Positions 59,701 through 64,000 of a DNA stretch of 64,000 nt are shown piece by piece. Within the stretch, counting starts at the first letter, position 1. Each line of letters opens with the position of its first letter. The notes below the pieces were generated by a model. It searched no databases. It had not been told where the DNA came from and saw only the letters and a list, made by a program, of their open reading frames with translations. Source of the stretch: Calcarisporiella thermophila CBS 279.70 (taxonomy: Eukaryota > Fungi > Calcarisporiellomycota); assembly GCF_041956535.1 (NCBI RefSeq), contig NW_027192206.1:333928-397927 (forward strand). Direction: 5' to 3'. Both the position numbers and the translations under genes were made by a program.

Positions 59701-60307
59701 TGTGTTTGGAGTGGCGGTAGAAGCGGTGGTTATCTTTGGTGGTGGAGAAGAGAGTTGATATTCAACAGAAAGGCTAAAGGGGAAAAGCGGCCTTGGTCTC
59801 TTTATATAATTAGAAATTAGCTCTTGCAAATTTCTTGGAAATTTCTTGGGTCTTGGAAGTGTGGCTAGCAGCCTATCCTGGGGTGGGACTAGGGATATTT
59901 CCCAGAGAATCTCGGCCACGGTGCCTTTGTGCTGCCCGCAGCCGTTTTGCTGAGTGCCGAGCCTCTGAAGGCTGGCGGAAAGCCCCTTCCCTAGGGGGCC
60001 TCCACGTGCCAAGGCGCCAGAAAAGGAAATTTCTCTTGAGACGTGGTATTTCTAATCCGAATAGGCGCGGAAAAATGCTTGTTTGTGCCCCACCGGAATT
60101 GGGGCCCAGGGGATAGGCCCAAATTAGCCGAGCAGTTATGAAAACGTGGACAAATCCATGGTAAAATGGTGGGCAGAGAAGGCTGAAGAACCTCTATAAA
60201 AGTAGGAGAGCGGTGAAAAGGTCGCGGCCCGATCTCGGCACTCTGCTCCTTTCTCGCCACCTTGCCTTTCTAGCCTATAAGGAATCAAACCCAATCCCGC
60301 CGCTTAA

Positions 60308-61074
60308 TTAATCTCCAATCCGATCTCTTATAATAACCATTCCCTCTTCAATAACAATATCAAAAGTGCATCCCAAACTCTTATGAGCAAATCTAGTGAA
60401 AGGAACAGAGAAAATAGATCTCCCATGTTGATTAAAGATGTCCCAAAACGATTTAGGATGACCATTCTTTACAACGCCAGCTAATTCCTTCAAAAAACGC
60501 GAATATGTTGTCCATTTGGTTTGAAGGACAAAGAGGCCTTTCTCATTGACCCAACGAGGGTCGGAGCCTTGTAACTAGTAATAGCAAACAGATTGATATC
60601 GTCCCTAGCAAAACTCGCCAACTGCCAAAACCCCTCTATGACAATTGCCGGTACTCCAATTTTAATACCACCACGCCTAGCATGGTTTGGGGATTTTATT
60701 TATCAAATACATTGGGTTTCAATAGGAGATATTAGATAAACCCTGTCAATGGCTTCATTTCCATCGATGGTCTTCTCCACTTCCACGGAAAATTGTAGAA
60801 GCTCCTCGTATGACTCCTTGTTAGCAGCCATTTCTTGGCTCCAATCGATTGAATCCGTACATTTTATTATTTTCTAACCTTATATTAACCAATCAAGTAG
60901 CCTCTTGGCTTCATAGAACACTTCGTCCCTAATGTATTGTAATGGTAAACTATCCAACTACCTTACTTGAAATAGGCTTGACATACGTATCAAACCTACC
61001 TCCATGACCATGGGGGCAAATGGGGTGTTTGCTTTTGGATTTGGTGAGCCCGATGGGTCATGCTTCTAAATCAT
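60308..61074 (-). pseudogene. Decayed intronless ~250-codon ORF of unknown origin
   Basis: One frame with six stops and a frameshift near 60493, protein-like composition. Confidence 0.4.
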
Positions 61075-61690
61075 TAAGCCACACTTGATTCTCCCTTATT
61101 TCCCCTATTTTTCCTATCCCGGGGAAAAGGAGGAGCAGATCATAAGAATAATAAAATGGTAAGCACTTATATGAATATTCTCTTTTTCTAATTTCTCTTC
61201 TTCTCTTTATTCCTCCATGCGCGGATGTGGAGATGTTTCTGAGTAAGATCCGAAGCTATGCAAGGTATCTCTGCTTGAAATGGCGTGTTTTAACAGCACT
61301 GAGGATTTGGGTTGCATTCGAACTTAAAGATTTACACCCTTCCCCCCCCCCTCTACTTGCAAACTCTCTACATCACATATCGACTTGTAGAGGGTAGCTT
61401 CACTAACTCAGTATTGAGGATGATCATACAGCCGTTACCACTAACATTCTATCCGCGAGAAAGAATGAAAGTCTTGTCCAGGAACTCTGAATTTCAGATG
61501 TGGAAATGCGTTAAATAAAGAGCTGGTCTGACTGCACCTCTGTCTATGAAGCTCTAGATTCTTGATTTTAGCTTCAAATACAGATCTTACTGCAAATTAG
61601 GCCTTACTTACTGCATCCATTATCTAGATTGCTTCCCTCTAATGCGCCCCATGGCTTATAAGAGCAAAAAAATTCGAGTGTAGGAAAGAG

Positions 61691-61698
61691 TATAAAAA
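61691..61698 (+). promoter_or_regulatory. TATA box of the Cys/Asp-repeat peptide gene
   Basis: TATAAAAA about 110 bp upstream of the ATG, followed by a pyrimidine-rich then C/A-rich leader and CAACCATG. Confidence 0.7.
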
Positions 61699-61802: not shown

Positions 61803-62211
61803 ATGAAGTTCATTGCCATTCTCTCAGTGTTCGTCTTCTTCGCCGCCATTTCTGCCGCTCTCAATACCGCCTCCCAGGATCTCCAGAGTCAATCTAATGC
61901 CGTTGACCTCAAGGTATTTCTTTGATACATGGGCAGGCTGTCGTTGAGTTGAATACTAAATTATTTGCGTTCACAATAATTAGAAATCAGTGGACATGGT
62001 GAAGCGATGGGATGATTGCTGCCAAGACGATTGTTGCAACGACAATTGTTGCGATGATAACTGCTGCCACGACGATTGCTGCGACGATGACTGTTGCCAC
62101 GATGACTGCTGCCACGACGATTGTTGCGATGATGACTGCTGCCACGACGATTGCTGCGATGATGATTGTTGCCACGATGATTGCTGCGATGATGACTGTT
62201 GCAACTGCTAA
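61803..62211 (+). CDS. Secreted prepro-peptide (112 aa) with 13 xD(D/N)CC repeats; metallothionein-like
   Basis: Exon 1 61803-61913 (signal peptide MKFIAILSVFVFFAAISAA), phase-0 intron 61914-61983, exon 2 KSVDMVKR followed by the repeat array. Confidence 0.88.
62008..62202 (+). repeat. 15-bp coding tandem repeat, 13 copies
   Basis: NNN-GAY-RAY-TGY-TGC units with mostly synonymous third-position variation. Confidence 0.95.
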
Positions 62212-63694
62212 AAGGTTGTCAAACCTCCCTTTTCTTCAACTATTTTGAAACCAGAACGAAGAGGCATTCTTTTTTCTTATTTTTGCACTTTGCATCGAAT
62301 TCCATCAAAATATTCTACTCTTATTCAATTTTATTTTTACTTTTCCTCGAATATGTTGTCCTAGCGCGACATATTAAAGAGATCAATTCAAGATCGAAAA
62401 TAAAATTTTTATCGTCTATCCCCCTACGTGCTTGAATTATGATTTCCAAGTGTTTTTTCTCTTGGAATAACAATCTGAAAGTTTGTGCTGTGCTACATGG
62501 AAGAAGAGGGTTGAATCTAGCAACGCTGCTGGCAATCGCATACATTTTAATAAGATGGTAGCTTGATATTGCGAAGAAGTTGAATGCACGACAAAAGGAA
62601 CAATGATTAATAAGGTTGCTAGAGCATGGCTTCATCTTCAACTCTGTAGGAGACCGAGCGGGCATTAGGAGCCTTCCGAACAACACAATTTAAGGGCATA
62701 TCCCGGGAAGTGGCTCTCTACGTGATGTTGAAAATGCTTATGACTTCTTCGAGCTTATTTAGAATACAGAACCTTTTGTCTCTGACCACATGTTGATTAA
62801 GTTACGTCGAAATGGATGATATGCGTAATCAACCTTAAAAAGGCCCCCCTTCCGGTCTCTCAAGCTTATCTTATTTTTGCACAAATACCTAGTACATATT
62901 TTTCCCTGAGTGGCTGACTTTAAAGAAGCCATTGACGCTATCCTGAGCATGGCTTAACCTTGGGGGTATCTACATAACATTCTTGATAGGCACATTAACC
63001 GTTATGCTCCAATCGGTCATTCAGGGGGGTTGACCTGCGAGCAATGGTAGGAGAAGTGGATGGGGGTGCGATGATGGGATGGGCCAAGAGGAGCGGCCGG
63101 CTTCGAGTCTATGGCGGTGCCTAGCCCACTTTGGGAGAAGACCAGTCTTGGAGCCAGGAATTTCCTCAGGACCGCTTGGAATCCTAACGTGAAATGGAGC
63201 CGACCACGGGCCTGTTTGTTTTCATTGGATTAATGGTTCATGTCACACAAACATACGTGCCGATCGATTGGGGAAAATGGAATTTATTTTTCAGAGCACC
63301 TTCATTTTTCTCCACCCATCTTGTACAGAAAAACAAGAATCACGTCACCGTCATCCCTCTCTCCCATCGCCATTGCTTCATTCTCTCCTTATTTTCTCCT
63401 TTTTGTTTTTGCGTGATTTGAGGGGAGAGCGCTTATGTAAATTCTCTCCTGTCACTGTTTTTCTTTTTCCCCATTTCCATTCTTTAATCACAGCTTTGAT
63501 TGATCGTCATCTCTCCGTCTTAGCATCTCCGGATTGCGATCCCTACACAGCCTAGGATCATCTAAAATAATACTATCGGTAAGCATTGTGTTGATGGAAT
63601 GCGGGCGGCGATGTTGTTTTCCTTTGCAGCAATACAGTGGAGCCTGGGTTAACATTTCTATTGTTTCATTCATCAATCCGACCCTATTAGAGAA

Positions 63695-64000
63695 ATGAGA
63701 ACACATAGAACACTATGGATAGTCGCACTTCTCGCCCTCTTGTTAATTGCAGCGGAGGCAAATATTAGTGATGGTGGCCGTAGAGTGGTAAAACGGCAAA
63801 TAACAATCCAGCTTCCCGACGAAAAGAATCCACCTCCACCCGATAAGAATCAACAAAACCCGGATAAGAATCAGCCTCCTGCCAATGGGAACGCGGGCAA
63901 TGCAGGCAACACCGGCAATAACGGTAATGCGGGTGGAGGTGCGAATGGTGGTGGGGGTGGAGGAACTGGTACTGGGGGCGGCGGCGGCGGCGGTGGAGGA
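63695..64000 (+). CDS. Secreted Pro/Asn/Gly-rich protein, 5' part; truncated by window edge
   Basis: MRTHRTLWIVALLALLLIAAEA signal peptide, VVKR|Q, PDKNQ twice, GN and poly-Gly low-complexity region; open to 64000. Confidence 0.75.
   Translation, partial: MRTHRTLWIVALLALLLIAAEANISDGGRRVVKRQITIQLPDEKNPPPPDKNQQNPDKNQPPANGNAGNAGNTGNNGNAGGGANGGGGGGTGTGGGGGGGGG

Follow-up and report, generated by a model that had tools for sequence, protein, structure and literature searches.

An undescribed family of predicted secreted, acidic di-cysteine peptides in Calcarisporiella thermophila and Mortierellaceae: candidate extracellular metal ligands

The window analysed here, a stretch of 64,000 nucleotides from the genome of Calcarisporiella thermophila, a saprobe placed as sister to the rest of Mucoromycotina (PMC10079182), carries near its 3′ end a small two-exon gene on the forward strand (61803-62211). 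From a start ATG at 61803, a first exon of 37 codons (61803-61913) encodes the putative signal peptide and most of a pro-region; a predicted phase-0 GT-AG intron of 70 nt follows (61914-61983; donor GTATTT at 61914, branch-like TACTAAA at ~61954-61960, acceptor TAG ending at 61983), and a second exon (61984-62211) closes with TAA. A TATA box (TATAAAA, 61691-61697) lies 112 nt 5′ of the ATG, and poly(A)-signal-like ATTAAA (62373) and AATAAA (62399) motifs lie downstream (62373-62404); the C14 paralogues described below have a TATA box too, and an AATAAA at comparable distance. A first-pass annotation of this DNA had proposed just such an intron, joining the repeat-coding frame to a signal-peptide exon behind a TATA box, and every element was found in place. 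The gene is presumably transcribed and spliced; left unspliced, exon 1 hits a stop three codons into the intron. An alternative in-frame acceptor at 62004 rebuilds K|R-W over the junction; whichever acceptor is used, the same mature peptide is predicted.

The coding sequence of 339 nt specifies 112 residues. By hydropathy, which peaks at 3.0 across 11 residues, the N-terminus is signal-like, with a signal peptide of about residues 1-18 and a putative cleavage site after ISA. The pro-region ends in exon 2 (61984-62007) at Lys-Arg (KR, residues 44-45; 62002-62007), where kexin would be predicted to cut and release a mature peptide of 67 residues, (xDDCC)13-NC (62008-62208; to 62211 with the stop). 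This architecture and its composition had been read off at first pass, and a recount gave the same figures: 29 Asp, 27 Cys, 5 His, 4 Asn, 1 Trp, 1 Gln and no Lys or Arg, for a mass of 7.6 kDa, a net charge of about -29, 40% Cys and 43% Asp.

The codons favour the Asp/Cys reading frame. Selection on this frame had been suspected from the repeats, and counts of differences from the repeat consensus bear it out, with 20 synonymous against 12 non-synonymous in the window gene (p 6e-4) and 77 against 22 in four copies pooled (p 8e-20), where the null is the 33% expected from transitions alone and the repeat units are not independent. The Thr/Ala-rich +1 frame is not favoured by the codon test (16:83). 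The antisense in-register frame has the same wobble positions as the Asp/Cys frame, and the test cannot separate the two, but the antisense frame has neither an ATG nor a signal peptide. In the Mortierellaceae relatives introduced below, three independent close pairs differ in the mature region by 13 synonymous and 7 replacement changes (p 0.004 against one third), a tighter constraint than on the pre-pro region; the raw pN/pS of ~0.1 is biased low by two-fold codons.

Five copies of the gene are present in the C. thermophila genome. The paralogue C14:418123 has a phase-0 GT-AG intron after the same codon as the window gene and is identical to it at 15 of 18 signal residues, in line with the claimed signal-like N-terminus, and at 9 of 19 pro residues; its mature part opens KR|WH and continues with 13 CC pairs and one single Cys. 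C14:419737 (L038:5738-5991) arose by recent tandem duplication; its promoter is nearly identical, and it has only three CC pairs. It has no GT at the shared donor, with another GT seven bases further on, and may be degenerate or decaying or may splice from that second GT. In the two C19 copies, whose 5′ parts are given as N, we counted at least 16 and 8 CC pairs; a stretch of ~400 bp upstream is common to both (337 of 402 positions identical). One of them adjoins a secreted-type precursor with three dibasic sites (C19 ~495,000-495,600; L040:6474-7124, minus strand), composed of Gly/Tyr/Cys-rich and Ala/Asn-rich modules, KEP-like and without a Pfam match. A candidate further copy, C18:191333, was rejected for lack of a signal or start context. 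The genome also contains six kexin-type P-domain loci (C5, C7, C17, C19); yeast has a single Kex2.

We searched the gene model exon by exon. A profile of the exon-2 copies, run against 1.84 billion representatives, returned 52 matches, most of them acidic period-5 repeats without CC and one a fungal family member, Linnemannia gamsii KAK3843584.1; short arrays were missed by the profile. A word-index search with exon 2 gave one candidate and no match, ESM Atlas queried with exon 2 and P0056 gave nothing useful, the best hit among PDB sequences had an E of 8.5, and NCBIfam had no match. Bacterial and viral DNA-pattern matches were not accepted as homologues. Roughly half of those from bacteria encode Thr-Thr-Ala-Ala-type linkers in another frame, and in the remaining bacterial ones the CC tract belongs to an unrelated protein. 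When the pattern was loosened to CC-n9-CC, antisense poly-Gln overwhelmed the results. We also observed xDDCC tracts in Planctomycete and Granulosicoccus proteins (L046, L047, L051, L053, L054; P0059, P0060, P0062, P0066) and as tails of DUF4342 and PF22746 proteins, apparently by convergence. The literature searched, which lies outside most subscription journals, held nothing on a DDCC metallothionein in fungi or a secreted metallothionein in Mucoromycota.

Later searches added L. elongata, Mortierella sp. GBA35, a Logan contig and Lunasporangiospora selenospora, and four further Mortierellaceae assemblies were reached through the neighbouring genes and then inspected for the ORF. An intact single-exon counterpart occupies one syntenic locus in all nine Mortierellaceae assemblies, between a gene for a Kre9-like wall protein and ORMDL, with PDI, RpS22 and CN-hydrolase genes mostly close by. 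Four of the nine annotations, including that of L. elongata AG-77, omit the gene although the ORF is intact (L082:2354-2803 (-), L083:5165-5521 (-), L084:9683-9994 (+) and L085:2601-2885 (-)), and the annotated relatives (KAK3843584.1, KAK3838602.1, KAF9088799.1 and KAF9582869.1) are labelled hypothetical or merely secreted. Mature parts in these fungi measure 20-82 aa, with 23-34% Cys and 37-56% acidic residues; seven of the nine junctions start (K/R)R|W(H/N) and two start NR|GG. Seven promoters (L066, L067, L068, L076, L083, L084, L085) contain CGCG-n3-ATTTATCA within ~230 bp 5′ of the ATG, and all nine have 2-4 HGATAR sites per 400 bp against a background of ~0.9 measured at five loci, which suggests control of the Mortierellaceae genes by a GATA factor (iron, nitrogen or development); the GATA element is absent from the Calcarisporiella copies. 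A second secreted-type protein of L. elongata, KAK3816781.1 (P0097/P0071; L080:10001-10657), has KR|W followed by a 30-aa acidic Cys segment and then, after RR, a Pro/Val-rich and GGPGF-rich wall-like module; it has no Pfam match, and as a query it found no counterpart in the C. thermophila genome.

The Mortierellaceae genes are probably kin to the window gene, and we consider common descent of the two sets likely. Both lineages have the signal, pro-region and cleavage-site layout, the acidic CC unit, the repeat period and the junction type: the uncharacterised Mortierellaceae proteins run from signal through pro-region and (K/R/N)R to an acidic CC array, mostly with L-x-(K/R)-R|W-(H/N), and LSKRWH is common to the C14 paralogue and L. 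elongata. Trp follows the basic site in 9 of the 12 complete members, compared with 3 of 160 background dibasic sites. The Mortierellaceae proteins differ in coming from a single exon, with no intron, and in a pro-region that is longer than in Calcarisporiella. Exon 1 of the window gene does not align with their pre-pro regions, which is why we call the kinship no more than probable; low-complexity arrays also converge easily, which counts against common descent. Synteny between the two was rejected, as the gene neighbourhoods differ. The sequences nevertheless make a well-supported case that two early-diverging lineages of fungi carry an undescribed family of small, acidic di-cysteine peptides, predicted to be secreted, for which a function can be proposed.

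Variation within this family narrows what that function could be. Every complete member has a hydrophobic, signal-like N-terminus and a pro-region, and the cleavage site, which the first-pass annotation had taken for a Kex2 site, is dibasic in 10 of 12 and NR in the other two. Mature lengths range from 16 to 82 aa (23-41% Cys in the homologues), CC pairs from 2 to at least 16, and total Cys from 6 to at least 33, with 6, 8, 9, 10, 24, 26 or 27 in the homologues; the shortest intact members have 20 aa and 6 Cys. In most complete members one Cys is left unpaired, at the C-terminus or close to it, and mature peptides contain 0-5 His. Three ideas of the first-pass annotation fare badly here: a spare thiol left by an odd Cys count does not fit a parity that varies, His as a needed ligand does not fit members that have none, and a disulfide ladder of fixed fold does not fit the spread in CC pairs. 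With Cys number, parity, His and length all variable, it is unlikely that disulfides fix the fold, that a thiol is held in reserve or that His is essential. We likewise rejected a hydrophobin- or defensin-type disulfide peptide, as the Cys number is not fixed. AlphaFold2 predicted no structure for the mature peptide (pLDDT 48), weak evidence from a single sequence. The conserved core consists of the signal, the basic cleavage site, the Asp spacers and the vicinal Cys pairs.

The first-pass annotation had recognised no family, and we found no described one either, the lone Pfam match being to keratin B2 by Cys-Cys spacing. Metallothioneins are defined as proteins of at most 300 aa with 15-35% Cys, less than 10% aromatics and a cytosolic location (PMC7216689). 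The window product is small enough as precursor (112 aa) and mature peptide (67 aa), has 1 Trp per 67 mature residues, and has 24% Cys (27 of 112) in the precursor, whereas the mature part lies above the range; its signal-like N-terminus and pro-region, from which its location is read, set it apart from cytosolic, leaderless proteins. Neither Pfam nor NCBIfam gave a metallothionein profile match. Yeast Cup1 and Crs5 and S. pombe Zym1 resemble it in being small, Cys-rich and poor in aromatics, with CC clusters, several gene copies and no predicted fold without metal, but the window product differs from them in its signal peptide, pro-region, dibasic site and strict pentapeptide period, and in a mature part so rich in Cys and Asp and devoid of Lys. 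At best the peptide works like a metallothionein, and we do not class it as one. KEPs, in which Kex2 sites separate the repeats (PMC7329392), are alike in their ER signal peptide (here from hydropathy) and dibasic processing. The window product has instead a single KR before an uninterrupted array that contains no basic residue, and was rejected as a KEP because Kex2 sites do not separate its repeats; the parts of the supplements of two KEP surveys that we could consult contained neither DDCC nor EDCC.

The best single hypothesis that we can infer for the window peptide is metal chelation: we give an even chance to a secreted, polyanionic thiol/carboxylate metal-binding peptide, metallothionein-like yet not cytosolic. 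The signal peptide would take the precursor into the ER, and kexin would cut after KR in the Golgi to release an unfolded, polyanionic chain in which Asp-Asp-Cys-Cys is repeated. In each repeat, vicinal thiols and carboxylates, sometimes with His, could make up an independent metal site, so that capacity would rise with repeat number. Soft or borderline metals (Cu, Zn, Cd, Ni) would be bound, probably Ca too, and the peptide might serve as their buffer, sink or scavenger in the cell wall, the medium or the vacuole. In half of the family, cleavage would also leave Trp-His at the N-terminus, where it is known to form a Cu(II) site; Trp-His stands at the predicted new N-terminus in 6 of the 12 complete members, while the window copy starts Trp-Asp and lacks that site. 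N-terminal Xaa-His peptides, one with Trp-His included, bind Cu(II) (PMC7503498).

Several lines of evidence point to metal binding. Among the non-Cys residues of 13 mature peptides, 69% are Asp, 8% Glu, 6% Asn, 6% His, 5% Gly and ~1% basic, and nearly all of these are possible ligands, which we count in favour. A CC number that is variable, with no fixed parity, fits additive sites rather than a fold, and the intact 20-residue members, short for building a structural polymer, are easier to reconcile with a ligand than with a scaffold. The tighter constraint on the mature region in Mortierellaceae is a further point in favour. A vicinal Cys pair preceded by acidic residues also occurs in Helicobacter Hpn (EEGCC motif), where an acidic Cys-Cys peptide binds Zn and Ni via CC (PMC10221980) and an Hpn-derived acidic CC peptide binds Cd with a competitivity index of 12.5 (PMC8041291), the CC pair being the measured anchor for all three metals. 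Comparable DDCC tracts lie in unrelated bacterial proteins: between HMA domains of ZntA/CopZ type (P0066, P0072, P0092, P0096), in exported CopL-like proteins (P0088, P0095; below the cut-off), in an ArsE-like thioredoxin (P0070) and in an FKBP (P0090). These Hpn and bacterial sequences differ from the fungal peptides in being bacterial, His-rich or embedded in larger proteins, with two to four motifs, and the likeness is a convergent motif without homology. Metal-handling contexts account for ~8 of the ~35 matches outside the family. It counts against the chelator that most bacterial DDCC tracts are in proteins of unknown function and that many are cytosolic.

The main objection to the chelator is that thiols are oxidised along the secretory path, so that the Cys pairs may have become disulfides by the time they leave the cell. 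Three further points count against it: no Lys in the predicted mature peptide would offset the charge of a metal-thiolate cluster; two phytochelatin synthase loci are already present in the genome; and the family has no metal-response element in common, an MRE-like TGCGCCC being found at -160 of the window gene only (background 0.23 per 400 bp), with no MRE-like site in the promoters of the C14 copies. The wider proposal of an ancient Calcarisporiella/Mortierellaceae family of kexin-activated extracellular chelators (secreted metallothionein or peptide metallophore), with capacity tuned by repeats and cleavage able to unmask a Cu(II) site, is tentative. If the chelator is real, it would be a new route of extracellular metal handling in common soil fungi, metallothioneins being defined as cytosolic, and one would then have to ask how such thiols get through the oxidising ER. 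In a 2017 review, Candida Pra1 was the only proven fungal secreted zinc scavenger to be named (PMC5812535).

A structural role is the main rival but less probable, and on balance we think it unlikely: after cleavage, the CC pairs would link chains by disulfides into an acidic, insoluble matrix that covers spores, sporangia or the hyphal wall, binds Ca2+ and might nucleate or inhibit mineral, much like di-cysteine and acidic proteins in the coral skeleton or keratin-associated proteins in hair. Oxidation in the ER speaks for such a matrix, and so does the period-5 CC spacing, which passes the 27-bit cut-off of PF13885 (Keratin_B2_2) in both exon 2 (30.8 bits) and a paralogue (33.2 bits). The keratin-associated high-sulfur B2 proteins are alike in placing CC every five residues. 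They are animal proteins of the intracellular hair matrix, with Pro/Ser/Thr/Gln spacers, and the window product differs in its Asp spacers and in its signal peptide and predicted secretion. Among 414 non-Cys mature residues of the family there are no Pro, Ser or Thr and 1 Gln, so the residues typical of keratin-associated proteins are missing; the PF13885 match rests on Cys spacing, and automatic annotation would mislabel the window copy as keratin-like. Coral galaxins offer a precedent as secreted matrix proteins with tandem di-cysteine motifs, and Asp-rich proteins bind Ca (PMC4890752), but galaxins have ~12% Cys and are much larger, and no galaxin-named match appeared in the Pfam, word-index or profile searches. 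The Mortierellaceae genes adjoin the Kre9-like wall protein gene and the PDI gene, KAK3816781.1 couples its KR|W acidic Cys segment to a wall-like module, and the CGCG-n3 element and GATA-rich promoters may reflect developmental control; against this, neither neighbourhood nor GATA element is common to Calcarisporiella, GATA sites are equally compatible with iron or nitrogen control, and members of only 20 aa are intact and conserved. The chelator and matrix roles can coexist, for instance in a partly cross-linked wall peptide that traps metal. Should the peptide prove structural, it would represent an acidic wall component joined by disulfides, of which we found no description for these fungi.

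It is improbable that the products are signalling or defence peptides (pheromone-like, anionic antimicrobial or RiPP precursor) with a W(H/N) end that is recognised and an acidic Cys tail serving as scaffold or carrier. The pre-pro layout with predicted kexin processing, the enrichment of Trp after the dibasic site and the three-site Kex2-type precursor beside one C19 copy would suit such a role. Yeast alpha-factor likewise begins Trp-His. Mature length, on the other hand, varies five-fold, a net charge of -29 is unlike that of receptor ligands or cationic defensins, only one cleavage site is present, and a non-systematic look recognised no tailoring enzymes beside the copies. Still less probable is a redox role outside the cell, as thiol/disulfide buffer or antioxidant, in which metals have no specific part; the very high thiol density and the linked PDI gene of Mortierellaceae could be cited for it, but it leaves the strict Asp spacers unexplained and finds no PDI linkage in Calcarisporiella. 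That the array is non-functional, a simple 15-bp repeat or a silent copy as its low complexity might suggest, is hardly credible given a diverged paralogue that keeps the intron, signal peptide and TATA box, the synonymous bias in the repeats and the intact ORF at all nine syntenic Mortierellaceae loci.

The preferred chelator reading is easily tested, as the shortest members, of 20-30 residues, are open to synthesis. Elsewhere in the window, short broken reading frames lie 5′ of the gene on the minus strand (60308-61074); a repeated transposon at this place was rejected, as 60250-61100 is single-copy in the genome. At the window's end, another signal-peptide ORF starts on the plus strand (63695-64000), with RR and KR sites and an Asn/Gly-rich tail, and reaches an N stretch just beyond the window end.
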